A stretch of DNA of 63,312 nucleotides, the filler included, from Guillardia theta CCMP2712 (taxonomy: Eukaryota > Protista > Cryptophyta), in NCBI RefSeq assembly GCF_000315625.1. It is 3 parts of 3 records of this genome, joined end to end, with 100 filler letters (N's around TTAATTAATTAA, not from the genome) between each part and the next. Parts side by side here need not be neighbours in the genome. Positions count along the whole stretch, not along the records: positions 1 to 14,950 come from NW_005434428.1; 2 more parts are not named here. One strand, 5' to 3'. This document shows positions 1 through 14,950 of this stretch, piece after piece. The notes beneath the pieces are model-generated. The model was given only the letters and a program-made list of their open reading frames with translations, was not told where the DNA came from and did no database searches. The translations under genes were made by a program, and so were the position numbers. Every line of letters begins with the position of its first letter. Position 1 is the stretch's first letter.

Positions 1-32
1 TCAAGTTGCCCGTTAACTTTGGGGAAAAATCT

Positions 33-233
33 TTATTTGAGCGGTCATGACGAATCCGGAGTTCGCCTCCTCGTGCAACAAATGTCCGAATGCTCAAACG
101 TTGCCTAATCGCAACCTTTCAAGCTGAAAAAAAAATCATTATTTGAGCGGTCATGACGAATCCGGATTTCGCCGCCTCGTGCAACAAATGTCCGATTGCC
201 TCAAACGTTGCCTAATCGCAACCTTTCAAGCTG
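33..233. repeat. Two near-identical ~95-bp direct repeats (33-126, 139-233)
   Basis: ttatttgagcggtcatgacgaatccgga...gcaacctttcaagctg occurs twice with few differences. Confidence 0.9.
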
Positions 234-283
234 CTTCCGTACAAAGCCGGAGAACGCCGCCTATGCCCCATTGGCCCCCTCAA

Positions 284-457
284 CTACGCCGCTTGACCCC
301 CTTATCTACGCCGCTTGACACCCTTATCTACGCCGCTTGACACCCTTATCTACGCCGCTTGACACTCCTCATCTACGCATCTTGACGCCCCTCATCTACG
401 CCGCTTGACACTCCTCATCTACGCATCTTGACGCCCCTCATCTACGCCGCTTGACCC
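284..457. repeat. ~21-23 bp minisatellite (ctacgccgcttgacacccttat), about 8 copies
   Basis: Directly visible head-to-tail repeats with small variants. Confidence 0.9.
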
Positions 458-574
458 ATACGCATCTGTGTACTTTTGCCGTCGTACTCAAGCACGCGCA
501 GCAGGCTCCATGCTGGGGCTCAGCAAGCTCAATGCTGTATATATGAACCGCACACCTCGAGAGCGCATGGGACG

Positions 575-1465
575 ATGCCCCGTACAATCTCACTGTTGCT
601 ATGCATTGCCATGATCCACGGCGCGATCTGCGGCCCATGCCCAGAGGGCACCATTGGATACGCGGGTGGGAATGAGACATATAACCTCCTCACCACGTGC
701 AATTTCGACAAGAATGCATACAGCAGCAACGACGCGACCACCGGGTGTGAATGCCAGTCCGGTCCGACAACCAGCCAGGACTGCATGATCGCGTTCGACA
801 ATGACACATCCACGGTATACAACATGACGGACGATGACTACCGATGGATGTGGTTCACCTTCATCAACATAGGGAGCGCATACATTGACAGTATCGAGTT
901 CTCAAACGGGATATATGCGGCCGACCATAGATCACAATATATAGCAAGGGTCGCAGGCTCCGAAACACTCGAGCAGATACACTACATACGCTGTCACCTC
1001 GAGGGCGATGCCATCCTCAACGGCACCTTTGTTTTCCGATGCAATGCGCGCGGCAGCCTAATACTGATACACAAGAATACCGTCAATGAGAGTGCAAGGC
1101 TATCATTCGGCGAGATCTCAAGCATCGTTGGATGCTCGGCATGCCCAAGAGGCATGAAGGCCAGCCCAAACAGATCCACATGCATCGCATGCGCGCAGGG
1201 TGAGCCGTGTGAAGTGTTAGCTGAAGCGACATGGCAACCCCCCGATGCCCCAATCATAATTCCCGATGCCCCAATCACAATTGCCACACAGGCCGCACAG
1301 GAAAGCTCGTCGGTATTCAACATCGTGATACCCATAATATGCTGCATCATAGCCTTGATGACAGGCCTATACTTGTGCCGCGTGTATAATAGCACGGGGC
1401 ACTGGCAGAGAAAGAAACCGGCAGTGATATCAAGCCATTTCAACCCGCAATACGGGTGTTTGTGA
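575..1465 (+). CDS. Intronless Cys-rich type-I membrane/surface protein
   Basis: ATG at 575 gives signal peptide MPRTISLLLCIAMIHGAICG; CxxCPxG motifs (CGPCPEG, CSACPRG, CIACAQG); C-terminal TM helix VFNIVIPIICCIIALMTGLYLC and short tail. Confidence 0.7.
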   Translation: MPRTISLLLCIAMIHGAICGPCPEGTIGYAGGNETYNLLTTCNFDKNAYSSNDATTGCECQSGPTTSQDCMIAFDNDTSTVYNMTDDDYRWMWFTFINIGSAYIDSIEFSNGIYAADHRSQYIARVAGSETLEQIHYIRCHLEGDAILNGTFVFRCNARGSLILIHKNTVNESARLSFGEISSIVGCSACPRGMKASPNRSTCIACAQGEPCEVLAEATWQPPDAPIIIPDAPITIATQAAQESSSVFNIVIPIICCIIALMTGLYLCRVYNSTGHWQRKKPAVISSHFNPQYGCL

Positions 1466-1546
1466 GCATTATAGGTGGTTTTTGATGCGCGGATGCGTGT
1501 TGTTTGAGATAAAAATCCTCACACTGAAACAATCACTGCGGAGCGA

Positions 1547-1561
1547 GCGGCCGAAGGCCGC
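1547..1561. terminator. GC hairpin gcggcc-gaa-ggccgc between two convergent genes
   Basis: Perfect 6-bp stem with GAA loop between the stops at 1465 (+) and 1582 (-); function inferred. Confidence 0.3.
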
Positions 1562-1581
1562 GATAGAGACAATTGTTTTGG

Positions 1582-2325
1582 TCATTCATATTGTTGTATA
1601 ACGTGAATAATGATTGGAATCATTGCATTGACATCGCCTTCGAACCATTCATTGCCTTCGGCTTTTGTGAAGTTGACTTTGAAGCGTTTGATGATTTCAC
1701 TTTCAATCGCCTTTACATTTCTTTTGGAAACCTCTTGGCATAGGAAGACACTGGATTTCTTTCCGTATAATGAAACTCTTTCTGGATATATCATGTTCTT
1801 TCGCATTCTACATATTGTCATGCCGATTTTGAAGACGTTGTCCTTAGCATATGCTGGTTGCACTAAGTATATAAAACCAGTTTTTCCGTCTGTGGTTTTT
1901 TCCTTTGGGACTAGTTTACAATTTTGCTTGTTTGTGTTCAGATCCGTTACTGGGGTGTCCCGTTGACCCTGTCCTGAAAACTTGAAACTTTCACATTTCA
2001 TCTGACAATCGGGGGTGTTGGATAAACCAGTTTTTCCGTCTAGGTTTTTCTTCTTTGGGAGTAGTTTACAGATTTGCTTGATTGTGTTTGGATCCGTTAC
2101 TGGGGTGTCCCGTTGACCAGGTCCTGAAAACTTGAAACTTTCACATCGCATGTGAAGAACGGGATTTTTGTTCAAAATTCTTTTCAGTATGATAGATGCG
2201 TGCTTGTTGCTGTTTCCAGTAACAGTACAGATAACATCTATTATGGAAAATTTTGGAGGTGATCCAGGTATAAATCGAAAGGATGTATATGGGGCAATAC
2301 ATGTCAAAGGAATCATTGAATGCAT
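1582..2325 (-). CDS. Bro-N-like DNA-binding repeat + T5orf172/MUG113-type GIY-YIG domain protein, giant-virus-like
   Basis: N-terminal SIIDVICTVTG...FKFSGPGQRDTPV, partly duplicated with a 150-nt period; C-terminal GFIYLVQ..VFKIGMT..IESEIIKRFK..GNEWFEGD pattern; intronless and AT-rich. Confidence 0.7.
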   Translation of the reverse strand: MHSMIPLTCIAPYTSFRFIPGSPPKFSIIDVICTVTGNSNKHASIILKRILNKNPVLHMRCESFKFSGPGQRDTPVTDPNTIKQICKLLPKKKNLDGKTGLSNTPDCQMKCESFKFSGQGQRDTPVTDLNTNKQNCKLVPKEKTTDGKTGFIYLVQPAYAKDNVFKIGMTICRMRKNMIYPERVSLYGKKSSVFLCQEVSKRNVKAIESEIIKRFKVNFTKAEGNEWFEGDVNAMIPIIIHVIQQYE

Positions 2326-2507
2326 TTGGATTGATGTTGTTTTTACTTTTGAATTACAATGAATTCAAATACTTTATTCTTTTTTAGAGAGACTTATAGG
2401 ATAAGTTATTTCATTCCTCAATACAATCGCGCACCGCTCATTCAACACACATCCACGCATCAAAAATCTCATCAAACATCACACACATCCGCGCATCGAA
2501 AATCTCA

Positions 2508-3170
2508 TCAAAAATCCGCGCAACTGCAAACATTCAGCGCCATGTTGTATTTGCAAGAGTAATCCTCAAAGGCCGGGTTCATAACGGCGGTGAAGCACGC
2601 AAGCAGCGCCGCATGGCAGAACCTCTTGTTCTTGTGTGCCCAACACTCGGGCACAAACTCATCGATGTCGATGTAGACATCGCTCCCGATAAGGGTATCC
2701 TCGATCCCTCGGATGAACTTCTTAGAATCCCTGCAGACCATGAAAAACTCCGTGGCAATCCGCGCACACGCGATAAGGTCCGTGTCCTTCCGTTCCGAAT
2801 CGGTCAGGGCCACTCTATTCCCGTCCATGTCAATCCGGCCCGAATCAGGCTTGCGCTTCTTGACGCTCAGTGTCACTGTCTTTCCATCGAGATGGAATGC
2901 ACTCCCACCCGAGAGATCGAGCCCAAACACACCGCTAGAGTGGGCCTTGGCAATCTCCTTGAACATCCCCTTGGCAATCACCCTAGATATGATGGATTTA
3001 TAGCTTGTCTTCAAAAGGATTGCATCCTTTACAGTGGTTGGGGATTGGATGAGGGTTGGGGTGAAGCTTGGGGTAGAAGTGGGAGTGGAAGCGGTGGGAG
3101 TGGAAGCGAGAACGGCAACAGGCATGGGATAGGGCTTTGGATTGGCCATGGATCGTGGCCCCGGATTCAA
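2508..3170 (-). CDS. Hypothetical intronless protein (220 aa; P/T/S-rich N-terminus)
   Basis: Open ATG-initiated ORF with globular-looking sequence; upstream repeat-rich putative promoter. Confidence 0.5.
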   Translation of the reverse strand: MNPGPRSMANPKPYPMPVAVLASTPTASTPTSTPSFTPTLIQSPTTVKDAILLKTSYKSIISRVIAKGMFKEIAKAHSSGVFGLDLSGGSAFHLDGKTVTLSVKKRKPDSGRIDMDGNRVALTDSERKDTDLIACARIATEFFMVCRDSKKFIRGIEDTLIGSDVYIDIDEFVPECWAHKNKRFCHAALLACFTAVMNPAFEDYSCKYNMALNVCSCADF

Positions 3171-3194
3171 AACAAGCTCGAACTCTCTTTACCA

Positions 3195-3535
3195 CAGGGG
3201 TTTTACTGCACACACAGCCCCCACAATAATGGTCTTTTAAAACACGTAAAATGTGATTGGTGCTCTCTAACGCAAGCACGTGCGTTTGGAGCAAAACAAA
3301 ACGGGTTTTACTACACACACGGCCCCCACAATAATGTTTTTTTATCCCCTTTCGTGCGCTTGGTGCAAAGTGTTTTTTTCTCTAACGCAAGCACGTGCGT
3401 TTGGAGCTAAGTTTATCCAAAAAAAACGGGGTTTACTACATACAAGGCCCCCACAATAATGTTTTTTTATCCCCTTTCGTGCGCTTGGTGCAAAGTGTTT
3501 TTTTCTCTAACGCAAGCACGTGCGTTTGGTGCTAA
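3195..3535. repeat. Three degenerate ~110-125 bp tandem units in a divergent intergenic region
   Basis: gcccccacaataatg and ctctaacgcaagcacgtgcgtttgg each occur three times. Confidence 0.85.
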
Positions 3536-3648
3536 GAAATCCAAACGGACATCACTATCCAAACGGATTGAAAAAAAAGATCAAATCTTCCAACGTACAG
3601 TTTTCAATTTTTTTTTCGAACGCGCGCACGTTCCCAGCAAGATCCACA

Positions 3649-4558
3649 ATGGCGAACAACTACATCTGCCATGCCCACAAATGGATCCTCAGCCACATCA
3701 GGAAGATAGATGGCCAGGGAATACTGTCCCCAGACACTGCACATCACATAGATGGCATCTATGAGCACTCAAATAGCATCATAAATGCCTGGAAGGACCT
3801 TTTGGGTGATCAACGCCTCCTCCATTGGTAACCCTCTCTAACTCCAATTTCAGAGCCACATACTGACATACCAACACGCAAGGTACCTCTTTGATCTCAC
3901 CTCGTACGAGATCAACAGGCTGCAGGAGATGATTGATGAAATCTCCATAGAAGATGAGAAGAAAGGGATCATCCAACGTTTCATCGACATCACAAGACTT
4001 GACCCAGACTCACCGATAGACCCTGTGGATGGGGAAGATTATCAATTCCATCGGGGAGAGGTATACCAATCCAGTTATCATCACACGAATAACCAATAGA
4101 CAAGGTGCTCGGGGACATACTCGACAACAACAAGGATGACTTTGAGGCATTCAGGACAGCCGTCAAGCAGGTGCCTCCCCCATTGTATGCTTCGCGCATG
4201 ACCTTCATTGCAGTTCTTTCCACAGTGCTCACAATTCCTCGCAATCAAGCACCGCACCCCGACTGAAACACCAAACAGGGAACTATCGCAGGGTCTCCTT
4301 GACTCCTGCATCGCCATCCTCAACCTATGGGAGAGGTTCACTTGGAGGCAGAGGAGGTTCCTCATCGAGGCAATCGAGATGTTCGATCCACAGATCAGGG
4401 CCGCAGCCACCTTCATCCGGATTTCCGACCCAACGATGAATGATATCGTTGACAAACTCCACATCACGGCAATCGGACTCAAGGACTGCAGATACGGCGG
4501 ACAACCTCCCCCACAGAAGAGGCAGAGGCATACCACTGGGACGAGACATCCACGCTCT

Positions 4559-4598
<40 letters not shown>

Positions 4599-4603
4599 CG
4601 TGA
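3649..4603 (+). CDS. Hypothetical spliced gene with poly-Asn C-terminus
   Basis: ATG 3649; clear in-frame intron 4171-4213 (GT...CAG) joins ...RTAVKQ to FFPQCSQ...; the upstream intron boundaries (~3830, ~4060) are not resolved. Confidence 0.45.
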
Positions 4604-4672
4604 ACGCGCACATGGCCGTCTTGTATCTTGTTCGAGTGTGTTTTTATTTTCATCTCAATGAAAAACAAAGCT

Positions 4673-4940
4673 TTAGTCGGAATCGGCGGTTCTTCCTGAT
4701 ATCAATATGTCAATGTATGATGAATTGCTTGTTGCTTGTTGTTGAGAGGGATGAGGGGATGACTGCTTCTCCTTCCTTTGCCGTTGAGAGGAGCGAGGGG
4801 CTAACTTCTTCTCCTTCCTTAGTAGTCGTTGAGAGGAGCGACGGACTGGCTGCGACTCATCCAGGGCTGGGGTGGAGCGACGGACTGGCGGCGACTCATC
4901 CGGGGCATCTAGTGATGCCCTTGGTCGCTTGGAGCCCTCC

Positions 4941-4990
<50 letters not shown>

Positions 4991-6349
4991 ACCGGACCGA
5001 GACTGCTGATCATCGCTTGATCTAAGCATCTTGCCGTGTACAAGGATATCGATTGCATGCATTCTACGCTCTCTCATCTCCTCCACTTCGGATTGCATCA
5101 ACAGGGCTTCTGCTTTGGCCTCATCTGCAGCCTTCTGTAGCAAATTATTCTGCTCTTCCAACAGCTTGATCTGTGCATCGTTCTGCTGTTTGACCTTGGC
5201 AACCTCCGACTTGGCCTTCTCTGCAGCCCTCTCCAGCATCGAGATGGAATTGGATGCTGATTCTAGCTGCGAATTCTTCGTCTCGAGATCCTGTTTGACC
5301 TTGGCAACCTCCGACTTGGCCTTCTCTGCAGCCCTCTCCAGCATCGAGATGGAGTTGGATGCTGATTCTAGCTGCGAATTCTTCGTCTCGAGCTCACGTT
5401 GAACCTTGGCAACCTCCGCCTTGGCCTTCTCTGCAGCCCTCACAAAACCATCCTTCTCCTTCTCCAGCATTGAGATGGTCTGCATCAAGTCGGATTGCAA
5501 AATTAGCTGCGCATCCTTCATCTTCAGCTCCTGCTTCACCCCATCGAGCTCACGTTGAACCTTGGCAACCTCCGCCTTGGCCTCTTCTGAAACCCTCTCG
5601 AAATGATCACCCTTGCATGGCCTTTGCTTCACCTGCTCAATATCACGCATCAGGTTTGAGATGGTCTGATGGTCAGATTCGTGCCGCTCTTTGGCCCTCT
5701 CGAGTTTCTGCTCAAGGTCGTTCCTTTGCCTCTCGGTGGTGAATAGCGTTGACAATGCCTTGAAGTACTCCTCCTGTCTCAACTTGAAGAGCTCTCGGTA
5801 CATGGTCGCAGGCTCATTGAGCTTCAAGTCGCATCTCCCATTGAGAAGGTAATCCTTTGCCTCGACTATGGTCCGGGACTCATCGCTGCAGATACCCGCT
5901 CTGGCTTTGTCCGAGTGTTTGTACTTGCTCATCATTCTGAAAGCCTGTTTGATCTCCATGTCTGTATATGTCTTGGTTGCGTCGAGACCAAGAGTGAGGT
6001 AGAAGAAGCCCTTTGTATAGTCAAAGGGGGAATCACGATCTTTGAGTTTCTTGGATGCTTCCTCCAGTTTGATTCGTGTATCTCGTAGATCCTCATTCAG
6101 ATCAAAAATGTTGTCTTTGAGATCACTTATCTCTGTTATCATAGCTTCGATGCGATTTTGTCTCTTGTCTAGGGCCACTTCAAGGTCAAGTATGTATTTG
6201 TCCTTCTTTTGCAGGTCCGCTTTCTGGTATGCATTCAGATCCTGCATTTGTTTGTAGCTTTCATCGAGGATATTGTATTGTTGATCAAGATTCAAGAACT
6301 TCTCGGAGAGAGATGTGTATTGATGCAGTAGAGAGGGGGTTGGTTCCAT
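4673..6349 (-). CDS. Coiled-coil protein with degenerate J (DnaJ-like) domain, 35-aa repeats and polyQ
   Basis: FYLTLGLDATKTYTDMEIKQAFRMMSKYKHSDK resembles J-domain helices I-II with HSD replacing HPD; repeated AAEKAKxEVAKV blocks; ATG 6349. Confidence 0.65.
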
Positions 6350-6497
6350 GGTTGGATATGCGAATGGGCACCGGAGCACCCAGGAACCGCTTTGATTTTA
6401 CTACAGGGGAACCGAGCGGTAGTAAAGATTAACCGACAACAAGCACGTGCAATCGGTTTGTCAGCATTTTTTTTAGTTTGCACCTTAGCACTTTTGC

Positions 6498-6674
6498 ACC
6501 TTAGCACGTTCTCTTTTTTTTGCACCTACAGCTACGGCGCTCCGATGCCCTTTTTTTTAGAGTCAGCATTTTTTTTACTTTAGCCCCTGTACCTTAGCAC
6601 GTTCTCTTTTTTTTGCACCTATAGCTACGGCGCTCCGATGCCCTTTTTTTTAGAGTCAGCATTTTTTTTACTTT
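6498..6674. repeat. Tandem duplication, ~84-bp unit (6498-6581, 6591-6674)
   Basis: accttagcacgttctc...gagtcagcatttttttactt occurs twice. Confidence 0.9.
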
Positions 6675-6753
6675 GGTTCAAAGAAGAAGAAAGTCTTCAT
6701 TGGAAGTGTGTAACGATATTTTTAGTCTGTCATTCAACGTACAGAATTGATAG

Positions 6754-6942
6754 TTGAAAAAAGGGATAACAGATTCACGAAAGACGTGTGTCAGAGGTTT
6801 GAAACGGTGTACAACCACTGAATGTTTCAAGTTTCCATTCGTATCCCGGGATGTCAATGCAGCAAAGAATATCATGCTATGTTTCAAGGCACTTCCTGGA
6901 AGGCCCGGATTTCTGCAAAGACCTCATCATCATCCTCATTAG
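6754..6942 (+). pseudogene. Fanzor/TnpB C-terminal remnant (Zn-finger half + RuvC-III)
   Basis: VRGLKRCTTTEC...VSRDVNAAKNIMLCF...RPGFLQR: RD-x-NAA-x-NI is the TnpB/Fanzor RuvC-III motif, preceded by a CxxxxC Zn-finger half; no RuvC-I/II or ATG upstream. Confidence 0.8.
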
Positions 6943-7060
6943 TCGTCGACTAGTGGGGGTCGTCGAGAGAAACATTCATTTGTTCGCTCTTGGCGGGTAT
7001 GCTCCCAATTGGGGGTACATACCATAGCCTATGGACTTCAAATTTGATTTAGATTCGATA
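6940..7060 (+). ncRNA. Putative Fanzor omegaRNA scaffold plus guide region
   Basis: Directly after the Fanzor stop: stem gtcgagag(6962-69)/ctcttggc(6987-94) with inner aaca/tgtt; stem ggtatg(6996-7001)/catacc(7018-23) with inner ctccc/ggggg; stem ccata/tatgg (7022-34); then acttcaa, resembling IS200/IS605-type right ends. Confidence 0.55.
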
Positions 7061-7130
7061 TTTATTTCGGATTGTCGTTTATAGGTTAATCTGTCATTCA
7101 ACGTACAGAATTGATATGAAATATAAACTT

Positions 7131-7463
7131 TCATACACGCTTTCCACGCTTTGACAACTCCTGGCACTCCCGCTCCAGCCGCTTGATGTTCTCACGGAAG
7201 AACTCATCCGTAACACTCGCAGATTCCTTCCATTCCATGTACCACCCCTCCATAACCCGAAGCTCCGAGAGCTTCTCCATCAACTCATCACAACATTCAT
7301 CATCGGCCTCACCCTCACCCTCTTCCTCACCCTCAACACACCTGTAACAAAGCCTAGGATCAACCGCAAGCCCCGGTCTCACCCCCGTAACCGCATCCGG
7401 CACGTTCATACAACATTCCTCAGCCCTAGCATCAACCCCACATGGATGGTCAAATGTAGACAT
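7131..7463 (-). CDS. Small acidic Cys-rich coiled-coil protein (110 aa)
   Basis: ATG-initiated intronless ORF bounded by repeats A and B. Confidence 0.5.
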   Translation of the reverse strand: MSTFDHPCGVDARAEECCMNVPDAVTGVRPGLAVDPRLCYRCVEGEEEGEGEADDECCDELMEKLSELRVMEGWYMEWKESASVTDEFFRENIKRLERECQELSKRGKRV

Positions 7464-7673
7464 CGCAGTTCAATCCGTAGCAAGCAAGATCGATCCAGAT
7501 TCGTTATTTATTTCGGATTGTCGTTTATAGGTTAAATGATTCTTTTTTCAAGAAAAATCAAGAAAAATCAAGAAAAATCAAGAAAAAAGAATCCCCAAAA
7601 ACGAAGGGGTCCTCCAAAAAACAAAAAAATATATCAACAACCATCCACCAAGCATTCGCCGCAGAAAAATTCA

Positions 7674-8153
7674 ATGTCCCAACAGCACATGAAGTCGCAA
7701 TCGCAATCCAAATCACAATCCCAATCCCAATCTCAAACATCCCATCAATCCATGGATATCTCACAAACTGCTTCATACGTCACAGCAGATTCATCATCCG
7801 AGATCAACTACATGACACCAAGATCGGATATATCTAGCATCACAATCGACCTAGACACAAGGAAATCACTTCCCGTATCACCACATTCATCAATGCTGTC
7901 ATGCATATCCGACGAATATGACTGCGTCATAGACGCATTGAGAGACGCAGAACTGAACGACTCCAAGAAAAATCAGCACGAGACCAATCAACAATGCAAA
8001 ACAAACACATTTTCAGAAGAAAATCACAATGACACCGCAGTGCACCAAAAGAGGCGCCGTGACGCAGCAAAAACAGGGGAGATGGCACACACACCATACA
8101 GGAAAAGAGCAAAGATGGGAAGTCCAAACACAAACTGTTGCATCATAGCATAG
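7674..8153 (+). CDS. Ser/Gln-rich disordered protein with C-terminal CaaX box
   Basis: ATG 7674 (MSQQHMKSQSQS); ends in basic RKRAK...NCCIIA*. Confidence 0.55.
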   Translation: MSQQHMKSQSQSKSQSQSQSQTSHQSMDISQTASYVTADSSSEINYMTPRSDISSITIDLDTRKSLPVSPHSSMLSCISDEYDCVIDALRDAELNDSKKNQHETNQQCKTNTFSEENHNDTAVHQKRRRDAAKTGEMAHTPYRKRAKMGSPNTNCCIIA

Positions 8154-8162
8154 ATATATATA

Positions 8163-8423
8163 ATGTCATATAATGTCATCTCGATTATGCCACCACGCAT
8201 TAATCACAGAATATGCCATATCAAAAAAATACGCATCAAAACATACGAGCCATCGCCGCAGAAAAAATTAGATGCTTTGTCACACTGCATATCCCTCCTC
8301 ACAAAAGACCCAAAATCCAATCGTCATAGGCGCAACAGGGTATCAGATATTGCTATAACCTCAACAAATATAAAAAAAGTCATCATTCAAACACAAAAAT
8401 GCATCCAACAAGCATCACAATAG
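8163..8423 (+). CDS. Small basic hypothetical protein (86 aa)
   Basis: Starts 9 nt after the previous stop; same A-rich codon style. Confidence 0.35.
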   Translation: MSYNVISIMPPRINHRICHIKKIRIKTYEPSPQKKLDALSHCISLLTKDPKSNRHRRNRVSDIAITSTNIKKVIIQTQKCIQQASQ

Positions 8424-8587
8424 TATCATTCCTCATGTTATTCGCGGTTTCGATCATTCTCACAATACTCCGAAAAAACACAACAAAAAAACGGGAAAAA
8501 CATAGTCATTCCCAAAAAAATCACATTCCAAAGCATAATACAACAGTGTATCCCTATCCAGACGACAATGAAACAGTATTCTGCTAG
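8399..8587 (+). CDS. Small single-pass membrane protein (62 aa)
   Basis: Hydrophobic ITIVSFLMLFAVSIILTIL followed by basic RKNTTKKREK; overlaps the upstream ORF. Confidence 0.45.
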   Translation: MHPTSITIVSFLMLFAVSIILTILRKNTTKKREKHSHSQKNHIPKHNTTVYPYPDDNETVFC

Positions 8588-8650
8588 ACAAATCCCGAAA
8601 AAAAAACACAAAAGTATCCGAATAATCTTCAACACAATATCAAGACAGCC

Positions 8651-8746
8651 ATGCTCAAGATAGCCATACTCATATTGATCATCATAGAGGCCACCATAAT
8701 ATCGGGATTGCTGCTACATTTGATAGACTTCGTCAGCACAGAATGA
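8651..8746 (+). CDS. 31-aa hydrophobic micro-ORF
   Basis: MLKIAILILIIIEATIISGLLLHLIDFVSTE*, below the ORF-track cutoff. Confidence 0.3.
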   Translation: MLKIAILILIIIEATIISGLLLHLIDFVSTE

Positions 8747-8759
8747 ACTCCGCGTATCC

Positions 8760-11700
8760 GTTTTCAAGAAGGCGTGCAAATTTGCTATACCCATGAAAGG
8801 TGCAACACATGAATCATTGCGTTATTGCCGCACAGGATTGCACCGCTGGATTATTGCGGCGGTTACATCATGGGATGGCGCGTAACTGGCGGTTTAAATA
8901 AACCGGTATGTAAAACGGTCAAAAATCACCTTTTGTCCCACATCATGAACTTTTCCCGCGTCACAAAATTTTTTGCCGTATTTTGGTCTTTATGAAACCC
9001 CCTTCCTCACAACACCGTCGGATTCACCCTAAACGTTGCGGAAACGAGGTCCATTCCGGTCGACGGCTCCTTATAACGGTTCCTTATAACCGTCCTACTA
9101 ACGAATTTTTCATATATAAGAAAAATATGTATAGAAAGAATAGCACGGATTCTATATGGAGCCCTTTCTTTTACTTAAAGTTGAGTAAACTTTCTTAGTT
9201 AAGTAACGTTCACAATGCAGGAAGCACAATGAAGAGCATCGACGCCGCCCTACAGCAAGGATGATGGTGTTGTACATCCGATCACGTCTTGGGATCATTC
9301 TAGGAATAGTTGTGCATTACTTCTACACATCTTTCAATCATGATAACGATAGAAAACCTTTCAAGTTAGACATGAACATGGTCTGAAGAATCATACTTGT
9401 CATGTTGAGATTCCCAAGTTGTCATTATCATGATGTCATCCATCCCCAAATGTCTTCCAATATGCAAGTCCCTTGAGCAACCATATCACGCTTGTTTCCT
9501 TTGTACACTGCACGATCATCCACACCCTAATCACAAAAGCATCTTCAAGCTCCCCTTACCCCGCACTTGTCCCATGATCCCATCCCCAAGAACATTATAG
9601 AAGTGACAAGGTGTAATCGTTGTTGCATGCAGCATAGCATCCAACTTCACAATGTGTCTGTACCTAATCCTCTCAAACCTGCCGCAGTGCGCATACTCCT
9701 TCACCCCCATCCCCAGTTCTCTGGTATTGCACTTGCATGTTTCTAGACATCACCGACAGGTACTGTACTGTGCTCTTCTGTATTGCACATTAATGTATTA
9801 CACTAGTAACTACACCAAAACATCTCTACATCCTTCGCCCTCGCCCGCTCTTCCTAAGCAAGTCCACCACCGTCATCCACGACAAATGGCCAAACCTTGA
9901 CGTCACGTTCCATTCTCCTCTTGCTTTCTTGTACACTTCCATCAGAAAGTTTTCACACTGATCATACATAAACCCCGCTTCCTCTATCCCTTCCGGTTGC
10001 TCGACATACACTCCCAGTGCTCTGGCTTCTATTTCTATTTCCCTCACAAGATAACGCAAGTCACTTAACCTCTTCTTTTGATCCTTGGTGTAGAAATGGC
10101 GAGGCTTCAAGGTTTTGTAAGCAGGATACCCTTTCTCCCTGTTTCCGAAATGCCATTGTGTATAAATTGCTCTTGCATTCGCTTTCACCCATTTGAAATT
10201 GGTGGGAAGTAACCTGCTCTCGTCCCCTTCCGCATTGTCATTCACTGTTTCATCTTCAACCTCGCCGCCATCGTCCTGAGCATCTTCCATCACATCTTCC
10301 ATCTCCACATCCTCCGTGCGACTTTCCATTCCCCTATCCCTCCCATGCCTTACCCCCATTCTTCTGCGCACTGCAGTACTCGCCAGTGAATGACTTACCG
10401 CTCTCTTGATCTCATCTGTCATGCCTTCTTTCAATTCCTTGATAGACCGTTTCATTTCTTCGAATTCCTTCATAGACCCTTTCATCTCTTCCAACGTATT
10501 CTGTATCCCTTGCAGGCACTGTTGCATTCCTTGCATCTTCGCATCGATTTCCTCTCTCAATTTGCCTTCTCCATCCCTTGTTTTGGTCACGAAATCATAC
10601 ATTCTCCACACAACCTCAATCAAATGGTTCAGGGTGTCCTCCGCTGCTGCTTTCACGCCTGCATCCACACCTGTTCCTCCATCCCCCAACCCACTCTGCA
10701 AGGAATTGGCTAGAGGACGGTTCTCTGCGATCGCTCGGAAGATTGAATCAGCTGAAGTGCGGAAGCAAACTGCAAGCTTCTCTTCCATTGTTGCATTTGT
10801 TTCTGTCAAGTGATTGATAGACCCTCTCATCTCGGTAATGTTCCCGTTCATGCCGTCTACGGCCCCTTTCATTTCTTCCATTGATCGGATCGTCATGACA
10901 TGAGGAGGCAAACCAGTGGGTCTTCTGCCGTTCCCGTCAATTGAAATGTATCGGCTCAACAATGGTAGAAATTCATGATATGAAAACAGCTCTGTTTCGA
11001 ATAGAGGATGATTTGCTGGCATGGTCTTTCTCAACCAATCCTGGTGGTAAACCACCGCCGCAATAGCCTGCTCTGCAATGTACTTCTTCTTCGCATCCAG
11101 GTTGGGGAAAAGATGCTCGATCACTCTGTCTACGTCCATTCTGCTTTCCCCATTTTCACATTTGAAGAATGGTGGCAAGATGGCAAAGTCCGCATGATTC
11201 ATGGGGAGACCGCACACTGTGCGTCCAACGTAGCAGTCTGACGCGGCTTCATACCTCAGGTACGTGTCGTAAATTGTCCCAAGCTTCCACCCTGCTCGAA
11301 TGCTTATTGCTGCTAGGCTCGGGCAAGCAGTGCTCCCACTAGAGCAGAATGTCGATGCACCTTTCCGAATAGAGTGACTCCCTGTACAAATGTAAACTGG
11401 ATGCATGCAGTGATTGGAATATGAAGCGTGTTACCGATTTCATTTGCATTCAAACCCTTCGCGTGAATTGCAGCAGCTACTTCCTCATCCGCAATGAGAA
11501 GTCTGTTGCATAATAGCTTTCGAAATCTGTCATACTGGTTTGTGCCTGATACTCGTGATCACTGGCAATACATGATGACCACAAGGCAACTTCACCTGGG
11601 AACAGACGCCCACCGCTAGCAGTATGATTAAAACCATAACAGCAGAAGTAAATTCCTGTGATATGTCAAGCGAGGGAAGATCCGGCTCCCACCCCCAAAC

Positions 11701-13117
11701 AAAATCATACTCACCCAGTGCTAGCAGAGGACATACTTCAGGTGAACACACGTTGCTGTAGACATGCTTTGGATCCCGCGGTTTCTCACCAGCCTGATCA
11801 TTTTTTGCGTGAATTACATAGAAGCGCAAGGCATCCCCGACGAATTCCATGTGATTGTACAACAGTGTGCATACGTTTCTGGATCTGGACATCAAATTCC
11901 AAGCCAGAATCAAAAAGGTCCTGGCCCAAACATATTCTCTTTCTGGTTTCTGTAGCATAACCTTGGCGAACACTGAGTACAAATCGTATGACAATGGTAC
12001 CTTGCCGGTTGTCACTTTTGCATCTTGATTGCAAGATTGAGAAAGATTCAACGTTCGCTTCAATCCTCTGAAGTCACTGCTCAATGTTTTCACCGCCTCG
12101 ATGCTCAGTGTAACCCCGTAATTCTTGAGCATGTGCATCAATCCTGACTTGTACGACGAGCATGTTTGGAATGTTAGTTCTGGATTTTGTTGAACTTTAT
12201 GGGTCACCCAGTCAAGAAACATCACTGGCGTGAATTTTTCAAAGTGGATGGGATTAATTTGCTTCTGTAACATTATACTCTTGATGTAAGTTGTAGTTGG
12301 TAAACTCTCGTCCGTCATCGCTGGCTCTGTCACTTGATCTGATCCGTTCAAGAATTTGTCATGTTCTTCACGCATATTCGTTTTGAATTCATCAGTTATG
12401 AGAGCATAATACTCGTCATTCGCGTACAACCATTCTATGAAGCGTATCATGTAGTTCATATACATCTCTCTGGTCTTCTCCGATACATTGTTCTGCTGAA
12501 TGCGTGTACGTCTTTCCTCGAATTCTCTCCGCTGTTGCACACATAAAACAGCAGCTGTGGATTGAGGACGCTTGCGACCTCGCCGTGCCCTAGGCTGCAC
12601 CGGTGATTGATCCAATGCGGCTTCAGGTTGCAATACGTTTTCATCTTCTTCCACAGCAAAAGCTGGAATAGCCTGTTCCCGTCTTACCTCTGGCCCCGTT
12701 GAATCACTGTCATGAACCTCTTCCATTACCTCCTCCTCATCCCCGGAGTCCCCTCGATCCTCTTCCGCCGTCACTTGCACTTCAGCACTGCGTAAGACAC
12801 TTCCCTCTGCGCCAGACATAACTATGCTTCCGTGGTTAGCTTGGTGCCGCTGAAGGACGTAATACCCCCCCACCCCATAATTCTCTTCAAAACAGGGGTA
12901 CTACTATGAATCCATCTGGTTCACGTGTTTGCTTTTTTTTACTTCCTGTGCTAAGACCTAGGTCCTATTCTTTCATATGTACATAACTAGCTATATACAA
13001 AACAAAAGAACGAATTTGACGGATTCCGTCGGGATCAACGGTATTTAAGCCCCTCATACAGCCCGCACATGCCCAGTTTTGGTCCGTGACGGCCCGTTAT
13101 ATTACAGATACGTTTTT
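8760..13117 (-). mobile_element. Crypton-type tyrosine-recombinase element (minimum extent; may extend leftwards with cargo)
   Basis: Intact recombinase gene; flanks share short motifs (gaaagaatag 9134-9143 inverted to ctattctttc 12965-12974; ccgtcgg, aacgaattt and ttttggtc on both sides); sharp junction with the satellite at 13118. Confidence 0.65.
9826..12819 (-). CDS. Crypton (CryptonS-like) tyrosine recombinase with C-terminal GCR1_C-like DNA-binding domain; exons 12819-11715, 11655-11596, 11545-11435, 11381-9826
   Basis: Splicing three GT-AG introns gives one frame: WNLMSRSRN (R), HAKNDQ (K), PKHVYSN..CPLLALG-IY..LFPG-TNQYDRF..NEIG-SHSIRKG (HxxR), RAGW, YLRYE (Y); C-terminal LPTNFKW..YTQWHFGNREKGYPAYKTL..KRLSDLRYL. 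Confidence 0.9.
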
Positions 13118-14950
13118 GGTTTTTGGATCTGCGATATAAAAAAGTCTTGTCTCGGTCACGTGATGTGTCACGTGACCGGTCAGGTGAGCCTGTCAGCCGG
13201 GTCACGGCCCCTGTCAGCCGGCTGACATGTCACGGGCCTGCTGACACGGTCCGCTGACCGGTCACGGCCGCCCGGAGAGATCAGGCCCCCGGCCAATCTC
13301 CGGACACTTAGCCTCCTGGGCGGGCCTCCAGGGGGTCTGAGGCGGGGCTGAAGGCTGCATTCGGTCTACTGACGGGCCCGGCCGGCAAGATCCGTCAGAA
13401 ACAGGGGGTCAAAGGAGGTTTTCTTCCCCCTGGGAGAAATGTCCTATGGGTTTTTGGATCTGCGATATAAAAAAGTCTTGTCTCGGTCACGTGATGTGTC
13501 ACGTGACCGGTCAGGTGAGCCTGTCAGCCGTCTGACATGTCACGGGCCTGCTGACACGGTCCGCTGACCGGTCACGGCCGCCCGGAGAGATCAGGCCCCC
13601 GGCCAATCTCCGGACACTTAGCCTCCTGGCGGGCCTCCAGGGGGTCTGAGGCGGGGCTGAAGGCTGCAGTCGGTCTACTGACGGGCCCGGCCGGCAGGAT
13701 CCGTCGAGAAACAGGGGGGTCAAGGGAGGTTTTCTTCCCCCTGGGAGAAATGTCCTATGGGTTTTTGGATCTGCGATATAAAAAAGTCTTGTCTCGGTCA
13801 CGTGATGTGTCACGTGACCGGTCAGGTAAGCCTGTCAGCCGGGTCACGGCCCCTGTCAGCCGGCTGACATGTCACGGGCCTGCTGACACGGTCCGCTGAC
13901 CGTTCACGGCCGCCCGAAGAGATCCACCCCCGGCCAATCTCCGAACACTTAGCCTCCTGGCGGGCCTCCAGGGGGTCTGAGGCGGGGCTGAAGGCTGCAG
14001 TCGGTCTACTGACGGGCCCGGCCGGGCAGGATCCGTCGAGAAACAGGGGGGGTCAAGGGAGNNNNNNNNNNNNNNNNNNNNNNNNNNNNNNNNNNNNNNN
14101 NNNNNNNNNNNNNNNNNNNNNNNNNNNNNNNNNNNNNNNNNNNNNNNNNNNNNNNNNNNNNATGTGTCACGTGACCGGTCAGGTGAGCCTGTCAGCCGGG
14201 TCACGGCCCCTGTCAGCCGGCTGACATGTCACGGGCCTGCTGACACGGTCCGCTGACCGGTCACGGCCGCCCGGAGAGATCAGGCCCCCGGCCAATCTCC
14301 GGACACTTAGCCTCCTGGCGGGCCTCCAGGGGGTCTGAGGCGGGGCTGAAGGCTGCAGTCGGTCTACTGACGGGCCCGGCCGGCAGGATCCGTCGAGAAA
14401 CAGGGGGGTCAAGGGAGGTTTTCTTCCCCCTGGGAGAAATGTCCTATGGGTTTTTGGATCTGCGATATAAAAAAGTCTTGTCTCGGTCACGTGATGTGTC
14501 ACGTGACCGGTCAGGTGAGCCTGTCAGCCGGGTCACGGCCCCTGTCAGCCGGCTGACATGTCACGGGCCTGCTGACACGGTCCGCTGACCGGTCACGGCC
14601 GCCCGGAGAGATCAGGCCCCCGGCCAATCTCCGGACACTTAGCCTCCTGGCGGGGCCTCCAGGGGGTCTGAGGCGGGGGCTGAAGGGCTGCAGTCGTCAG
14701 GCTACTGACGGGCCTGGCCGGCAGGATCCGTCGAGAAACAGGGGGGGTCAAGGGGAGGTTTTCTTCCCCCTGGGAGAAATGTCCTATGGGTTTTTGGATC
14801 TGCGATATAAAAAAGTCTTGTCTCGGTCACGTGATGTGTCACGTGACCCGGTCAGGTGAGCCTGTCAGCCGTCTGACATGTCACGGCCTGCTGAACACGG
14901 TCCGCTGACCGGTCACGCCGCCCGGAGAGATCAGGGCCCCGGGCCAATCT
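13118..14950. repeat. GC-rich tandem satellite, ~311-340 bp unit, at least 6 partial or complete copies, runs into gaps
   Basis: Unit starts ggtttttggatctgcgatataaaaaag at 13118, 13449, 13760, 14449 and 14789; contains palindromes cggtcacgtga-tgtg-tcacgtgaccg, gtcagccggctgac and tgacatgtca. Confidence 0.95.

Follow-up and report, generated by a model that had tools for sequence, protein, structure and literature searches.

In the cryptophyte Guillardia theta, a Fanzor1 named GtFz1 has already been described. Its guide RNA (omegaRNA) is 153 nt long with four stem-loops and a scaffold of ~140 nt, and it overlaps the last 17 codons of the gene (Saito et al. 2023, PMC10432273; Xu et al. 2024, PMC11423790). 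The target-adjacent motif (TAM) of GtFz1 is TTAA(N), every base of which is required, and Fanzor1 cuts 14-21 nt from the TAM (PMC10432273; PMC11423790). The scaffold in a Fanzor1 complex takes in the 3' target-site duplication (TSD), with the guide next in line (PMC13565253), and the right terminal inverted repeat (TIR) of the transposon is included in Fanzor RNAs (PMC10530073). The structures of GtFz1, SpuFz1, and PpFz1 have a conserved first stem-loop of 7 bp, SL1 (PMC10432273; PMC11423790). Here, we describe a different Fanzor1 locus from the same organism. It lies in positions 1-14,950 of the stretch shown, which are base-for-base identical to JH993210.1:1-14950 of G. theta CCMP2712 (GCA_000315625.1). 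We refer to this 15-kb piece as the window, and all coordinates are positions in it.

The locus holds the last codons of a Fanzor1 gene, four hairpins on the same strand, and the right end of a transposon. A copy of the sequence just beyond that right end abuts the point where the gene is truncated. We favor the account that this is the truncated right end of a Fanzor1-carrying TIR transposon with an omegaRNA-like module, and that it is most likely an inert and young relic. We give this account a probability of roughly 0.6. An earlier reading of the sequence (the original prediction) had described a Fanzor stump of about 60 codons, followed by three stem-loops, and had proposed that the locus programs a full-length Fanzor in trans.

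We begin with the protein. The plus-strand open reading frame (ORF) at 6754-6942 encodes 62 residues, ending in CVRGLKRCTTTECFKFPFVSRDVNAAKNIMLCFKALPGRPGFLQRPHHHPH before the stop codon, and it does contain the CxxxxC, RDVNAAKNI, and RPxFLxR motifs of a Fanzor/TnpB C-terminus, as originally predicted. The cysteine pair, CTTTEC, is the second half of the zinc ribbon. The RuvC-III motif, (R/H)DxNAAxNI, is present as SRDVNAAKNI (6844-6873), with the invariant R, D, N, A, N, and I retained. Using phmmer against 1.84 billion representative proteins, we found that the remnant matches the extreme C-terminus of Fanzor1-like proteins of 560-670 amino acids (16 matches at E <= 1e-3). The best relative is P0002, the product of a transcript from Hanusia phi: positions 11-57 of the remnant align to residues 551-597 of its 598 residues, with 64% identity (E = 6e-10). 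P0003, P0006, P0007, and P0008 match at the C-terminus in the same way. Over the C-terminal 44-56 residues, the remnant and its relatives are 47-66% identical, and every column that is invariant in the C-terminal alignments is kept in the remnant (RGL, the two cysteines, RD-NA-NI, and RP). (The top phmmer match, P0001, was rejected as an artefact: it is a DUF1375 repeat protein with 20 short matching stretches.)

Taken alone, the remnant falls below significance in Pfam, where it matches positions 29-60 of PF07282 (Cas12f1-like TNB) with E = 0.11. The full-length relatives match PF07282, and four of the seven clear its gathering cutoff. P0002 also aligns over ~500 residues to the solved structure of SpuFz1, the Fanzor1 from Spizellomyces (8gkh; E = 1e-5). 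The link from the remnant to an experimentally solved Fanzor1 is an indirect one, by sequence similarity through P0002 to SpuFz1.

What is left at the locus is a Fanzor1 remnant and not a nuclease. When we compared six full-length relatives to the window with tblastn, the match was restricted to 6754/6790-6921. No further piece of Fanzor was found in the 15 kb; in particular, the RuvC-I aspartate, the RuvC-II glutamate, and the WED and REC regions were not found in the window by this search. The C-terminal alignment indicates that the zinc ribbon is incomplete as well, with the CTTTEC pair only, because the first CxxC of the relatives falls upstream of the truncation.

Judging from sequence comparisons, the remnant belongs to a Fanzor1 lineage different from GtFz1. 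GtFz1 is full length, it ends in ...CTNDSCCSRWWNRNVAGAFNIL... (with NRNVAGAFNI), and by eye this C-terminus is only about one-third identical to the remnant. In searches of the PDB, GtFz1 is not among the matches (E <= 1) of a profile built from the remnant's clade, and SpuFz1 is the sole match of P0002. The omegaRNA of GtFz1 has no sequence similarity by eye to the hairpin region described below, and the right-end motif of our element is not in the published G. theta Fanzor loci. The two loci are nevertheless alike in layout: both are from G. theta, and both pair a Fanzor1 with a four-stem-loop (here, putative) RNA of similar size that overlaps the end of the ORF and ends at the right end of the transposon. 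The guide of GtFz1 comes from the flank, and its TAM, TTAA(N), recalls the TTAA at the end of our element.

This is a second Fanzor1 lineage in G. theta. It has not yet been described there; elsewhere, it is known from Hanusia phi and giant-virus contigs. P0002, P0007 (encoded by contig L003), and the proteins of the giant-virus contigs L001, L002, L008, and L014/L015 resemble the remnant at the C-terminus, but they are full length and come from other organisms, and their 3' flanks cannot be aligned to 6943-7071. (The terminal repeat of L003, which lies further right, is the exception.) L014 and L015 (positions 2501-4255) carry the lineage in giant-virus metagenome-assembled genomes of 242-344 kb. 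In L001, L002, and L008, it is found on gene-dense, virus-like contigs beside PARP, YqaJ, and patatin-like genes. Scanning metagenomes with a pattern from a three-sequence alignment returned one locus, L008. IMG/VR held no relative of the remnant, and a phage collection had no match to the DNA or to the remnant's translation. The viral contigs suggest that the lineage was spread into cryptophytes by viruses.

We then located the right end of the element. It ends at 7089, in ...GGTTAA. Three observations place the boundary here. First, a second copy of 7039-7089 lies at 7485-7535. Over the final 39 nt, the two copies are 38/39 identical (B, 7051-7089, and B', 7497-7535, both on the plus strand), and the similarity stops exactly after GGTTAA. 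B' is a solitary right end, without a Fanzor remnant, the partner arm of the last hairpin, or the flank duplication described below. Second, the end is homologous to the TIR of a related transposon. L003 (Logan SRR20069373, positions 1-2276) has inverted repeats at both ends of the contig, TATCCTTTAAACGTCAAGAG and the reverse complement of TAACCTTTAAACGACAAAAG (none of 2000 shuffles was as good). In the window, 7072-7088 shares 16 of 17 positions with the TIR at the right end of L003, and the reverse complement of the right end matches both TIRs of L003 (6 and 11 of 2000 shuffles, respectively, score as well). Third, the TIR forms one arm of the fourth hairpin. The end thus consists of the TIR, TTGTCGTTTATAGG (7072-7085), followed by TTAA (7086-7089). 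L003 is itself apparently one complete transposon of 2.3 kb, with only the 670-residue P0007, a Fanzor1, between inverted repeats of ~20 bp at the exact ends of the contig.

The boundary bears on where a guide would start. The original prediction put the start at about 7042, and this turned out to be inside the element: 7039-7089 is repeated elsewhere, ends with the TIR of L003, and takes part in hairpin 4, so the proposed 20-mer at 7042 is element sequence. Since the 3' TSD belongs to the scaffold in Fanzor1 complexes, with the guide after it, a guide from this locus would begin at 7090.

Transposons of the piggyBac type, which have TIRs, target TTAA, and carry Fanzor, are listed for Repbase (PMC13565253). 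Our element resembles them in that its TIR ends in ...ATAGG beside TTAA, as L003 ends in TTAT-CCTTTAAACG...CGTTTAAAGG-TTA. It differs from them in having a right TIR and a single TTAA, with no left end or transposase found and no second TTAA that would show a target-site duplication. None of the nine long ORFs that we scanned has a transposase domain (a set that leaves out ORFs of 195-220 amino acids elsewhere in the window), and L003 carries only Fanzor. Two candidates for a left TIR, at 6426-6439 (gapped) and 8553-8572, were rejected because they score no better than unrelated places in the window. Matches in IMG/VR to the 17-nt TIR pattern (L005-L007) were also rejected: no Fanzor lies nearby, and their number is what is expected by chance.

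From just before the Fanzor stop codon to the right end, the plus strand folds into stable hairpins. The three stem-loops of the original prediction are real (6930-7045 has a predicted folding energy of -46.5 kcal/mol, with z = -5.3 and none of 200 shuffles equally stable, and each stem-loop is significant alone), but there are four. Hairpin 1 (6932-6960) has 13 bp and contains the TAG stop codon (6940-6942); its energy is -16.1 kcal/mol (z = -5.4), versus -7.3 on the minus strand. Hairpin 2 (6961-6995) has -13.7 kcal/mol (z = -3.6), versus -6.4 (z = -1.0), and hairpin 3 (6996-7023) has -13.3 kcal/mol (z = -3.0), versus -12.9. Hairpin 4 (7025-7088) has -21.9 kcal/mol (z = -5.3), versus -5.5 (z = -0.7), and its 3' arm consists of the TIR and part of the TTAA. 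The motif GGACTTCAA occurs at 7032-7040. Rather than closing the scaffold, it supplies the 5' arm and loop for hairpin 4.

As a whole, 6940-7089 folds at -54.7 kcal/mol on the plus strand (z = -5.9; none of 200 shuffles was equally stable) and at -32.7 kcal/mol on the minus strand (z = -3.3). The plus strand is more stable by 22 kcal/mol. The plus-strand fold has 62 pairs, of which 12 are G.U, and this is why hairpins 1, 2, and 4 are far weaker on the minus strand. This difference between the strands bears on whether the hairpins could instead be palindromes at the DNA level (transposase sites or cruciforms) or signals for the 3' end of a convergent ORF. The subterminal regions of transposons are often palindromic, and ORF X, on the opposite strand, ends 41 nt to the right of the element. 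Palindromes in DNA would fold equally on both strands, though, so the strand-specific stability argues for an RNA on the Fanzor strand, and we consider the DNA-level and 3'-end explanations very unlikely.

The position of the hairpins also fits an omegaRNA. The structured block (6932-7088) starts upstream of the stop codon, by 10 nt, and closes with the TIR and TTAA. This is where the omegaRNA of a Fanzor1 is found: on the strand of the nuclease, overlapping or following the end of the ORF, and continuing through the right TIR and 3' TSD. A search of the whole piece against Rfam (E <= 1) gave no significant match in or near the hairpins and only a spurious hit to CrcZ at 4560-4628, and a scan for tRNA and tmRNA found none, so no described RNA family explains the module. 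From the modeled fold and its placement, we infer that the four hairpins are an omegaRNA scaffold. The 3' flanks of some relatives are also strongly structured (L004, z = -4.1; L008, z = -4.2).

Several points weigh against our account of the locus. The window has no left TIR within 3 mismatches, so the type of transposon is judged from one end. The nearest full-length relatives, which come from other organisms and have C-terminal identities of at most 66%, share nothing in their 3' flanks with 6943-7071. (We compared the flanks of L001-L004, L008, L010-L014, and L016 by alignment or inspection, and L003 alone shares the TIR, at 7072-7088.) A second copy was found for the last 39 nt only, and none for hairpins 1-3. 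Hairpin 1 has 13 bp, in contrast to the conserved 7-bp SL1 of the solved Fanzor1 complexes, although the SL1 of any such RNA could lie elsewhere. Finally, the case for inactivity comes from protein collections and not from the genome or RNA data of G. theta.

The left edge of the fragment shows that more than truncation took place. The 27-mer TCTGTCATTCAACGTACAGAATTGATA occurs exactly twice in the window, and never in shuffled sequences: at 7090-7116, just past the right end, and at 6726-6752, next to the truncation point of the Fanzor ORF (27/27 identical). With the preceding tetranucleotide, the repeat is 31 nt long (A1, 6722-6752, and A2, 7086-7116, both on the plus strand), and its sole difference is TTAG on the left versus TTAA on the right. 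From 7090 onward, A2 is also the would-be guide. The would-be guide and its perfect, TTAG-flanked match are 364 bp apart, on either side of the fragment. Just left of A1, an 8-nt patch, CGATATTT (6714-6721, plus strand), is identical to 7056-7063 inside the right end (local alignment; shuffle p ~ 0.003). The patch and A1 look like a copy of the junction between the right end and its flank, made with a jump of 22 nt across the TIR. Read from left to right, the locus consists of TTAG-A, then the remnant with its four hairpins and TIR-TTAA, then a second A; ORF X, an orphan, comes next, ahead of the solitary copy of the right end. The 27-mer is absent from IMG/VR. (We also considered A as a degenerate left TIR and rejected this, as the similarity is not significant in a shuffle test.)

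Because the left edge is a copy of the fragment's own right flank, the fragment did not arise by simple internal decay or erosion. Nor was there a tidy deletion that kept exactly the RNA-coding part, as had been supposed: ~180 nt of coding sequence remain upstream of hairpin 1, and the copied flank points to repair or duplication. The event appears to be recent, given the 27/27 identity of A1 and A2, the 38/39 identity of B and B', the invariant residues, and the intact frame. (The chance that a frame of 62 codons remains open is ~0.03.)

What kind of event copied the flank? One possibility is an aborted, Fanzor-guided homing event, which would have left a fossil. An empty TTAA site would have been cut with the guide from flank A, no more than ~30 bp away from where the element inserts, and repair would have copied only the right ~340 bp of the element. 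This could happen by one-sided synthesis from a filled copy and end joining, or by integration of a small circle, and it would leave the TAM and A1, a partial element, and A2. A filled allele could have served as the template; a more speculative choice is the omegaRNA transcript. The target, which would lie next to the source of its guide, would have escaped re-cutting by changing from TTAA to TTAG. The observed layout (TTAG-A1, remnant-hairpins-TIR-TTAA, A2) is exactly what this predicts. Also, the duplication starts precisely at the boundary of the element and TTAA and is only 27 nt long, so the break was next to the insertion site, which is where a Fanzor guide directs cleavage. The lone difference in 31 nt falls within the tetranucleotide that corresponds to the TAM of GtFz1, in which all bases are required. 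And restorative homing is an accepted role of TnpB and has been proposed for Fanzor (PMC13565253; PMC10530073). On the other hand, 27 nt are retained here, which exceeds the cut distances of known Fanzor1 proteins; there are two extra nucleotides at the junction; and the 8-nt patch to the left of TTAG is not expected if that side is pristine host flank. By chance alone, the lone difference would land in the four TAM bases with a probability of 4/31. The argument concerns a single locus, and the TTAA TAM of this lineage is presumed by analogy. Overall, we view homing as possible but unlikely.

Alternatively, the locus could be two non-autonomous elements in tandem, each with left end A and right end B: one at 6726-7089 with the remnant, and another at 7090-7535 with ORF X, separated by TTAA. 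The regular order TTAG-[A...B]-TTAA-[A...B']-TTAA fits, and ORF X is not necessarily a host gene, since 5.8 billion protein clusters contain no homologue but the ORF itself. This arrangement conflicts with the inverted terminal repeats of the family, as seen in L003: A does not resemble the reverse complement of B or the ends of L003 (443, 226, and 1145 of 2000 shuffles score as well). In addition, local alignment finds the two interiors (6753-7038 and 7117-7484) to be unrelated, and neither the A nor the B end has another copy in the window or in the rest of L009. We think that tandem elements are improbable.

The best-supported origin is generic: either break repair with templated filler, or tandem duplication with deletions. 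This requires several steps, and it accounts for the 8-nt patch. The three routes cannot be separated from one locus; on balance we prefer generic repair over a Fanzor-guided cut, and we disfavor the tandem elements. In the account that we prefer, a full Fanzor1-carrying TIR transposon was once present in the nuclear genome of G. theta. Error-prone repair of a double-strand break, or a local duplication, would then have copied only the right-hand ~340 bp at the same site. The left edge would have been fused to a 31-nt copy of the element's own right boundary and flank, after an 8-nt patch from the right end. The leftover is the last 62 codons and ~158 nt (6932-7089) that are predicted to fold into four consecutive hairpins, and any guide made here would start at 7090.

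Internally deleted DNA transposons offer a precedent for such repair. They arise by abortive gap repair, with templated filler DNA at the junctions. The junction here is similar, with short patches that were copied from nearby (8 nt and 31 nt). In contrast, the classical examples keep both ends, while the left end here was replaced by a copy of the right flank.

We then asked whether the locus could still act as a stand-alone source of guides. The remnant would have to be transcribed and processed, its RNA would have to load onto a full-length Fanzor of G. theta, and the complex would target TTAA-flanked matches to the flank. There is some reason to entertain this, because the scaffold-like fold is intact and strand-specific, the remnant is young, and a bacterial parallel exists: PATEs are protein-less derivatives of IS200/IS605 that still encode omegaRNAs and need TnpB in trans (Meers et al. 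2023, PMC10055086). Like a PATE, the locus lacks a nuclease and retains its guide-RNA module, and it could work only with a nuclease supplied in trans. Unlike it, PATEs keep both ends and form families beside intact copies of TnpB, whereas this locus has a right end only, is the one known copy, and has no cognate that we found.

Most of the evidence runs the other way. In the protein collections that we searched, no G. theta protein is among the 16 matches of the remnant or among the 30 matches of P0002 (E <= 1e-5). The best relative anywhere is the one from Hanusia phi (64% over 47 residues), whose own relatives among 5.8 billion clusters reach at most 39% identity. The short, NCBI-derived matches belong to other assemblies. 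GtFz1 has a divergent C-terminus and an unrelated omegaRNA, so its compatibility with this RNA should not be assumed. The region that lay upstream in the Fanzor gene itself has been lost, and the neighboring long ORF (4673-6379) is on the opposite strand. Within 15 kb, the would-be guide matches nothing but A1, the duplicate next to the fragment and behind TTAG, and the guide that was first proposed is part of the element, as discussed above. Activity in trans seems improbable, and that part of the original prediction lacks support without being disproved. Since the promoter-bearing upstream part is missing and the searched proteins include no cognate nuclease, we expect that the relic is most likely inert.

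The locus matters because the role of Fanzor in eukaryotes is still inferred from bacterial TnpB, which restores its transposon by homing. A life cycle of this kind is expected to leave behind truncated copies whose guide module is intact, and the duplicated flank makes this locus "self-targeting" on paper. If the genome contains several such loci, they would count as direct evidence from the genome for in vivo cutting by Fanzor of its own empty sites, and they would give the TAM and the cut distance of the lineage without biochemistry. If this is a one-off repair scar, then it is ordinary transposon decay. More scars, or a cognate nuclease in the genome, would raise the significance of the locus.

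The window has several other features. ORF X (7134-7463, minus strand, 110 amino acids, annotated by NCBI), whose single exact match is on JH993210.1, lies between repeat A and the solitary copy of the right end. One base past that copy, a 205-residue ORF starts in the divergent direction (7536-8153, plus strand), with four copies of TCAAGAAAAA at 7548-7587. Just left of the remnant (6495-6674) are two 93-bp tandem units that are rich in T runs, and a third, partial copy of their end lies at 6460-6480; these may belong to the element or to host intergenic DNA. Three tandem units of 105-125 bp at 3191-3536 contain the palindrome GCAAGCACGTGC, and a related sequence, AAGCACGTGC, is found near the remnant at 6441-6450. 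The long ORF at 4673-6379 (minus strand) is a coiled-coil ORF of 568 amino acids with in-frame repeats of 105 bp and a run of 18 glutamines; NCBI annotates a shorter product of 393 amino acids.

Farther away, a 247-residue ORF (1582-2325, minus strand) has a T5orf172 domain of the GIY-YIG type (E = 5e-6) and an internal tandem duplication of 150 bp (1874-2170). Genes of the T5orf172 type are common in polinton-like viruses of cryptophytes (PMC12220804). On the other side of the remnant, two adjacent ORFs of 526 and 447 amino acids (9826-11406 and 11530-12873, both on the minus strand) have no Pfam hits. From the motifs HSIRKGAST...YLRY, we take them to be one tyrosine-recombinase gene of the Crypton type, presumably split by a frameshift or an intron. 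Their relatives include P0021 from a JGI metagenome (90% identical), a protein from Hanusia phi (44%), and one that is named "integrase" by its source. The remainder of the window, from 13072 to the edge of the piece at 14950, is a GC-rich (58-61%) tandem array with units of ~310-360 bp and many internal inverted repeats.

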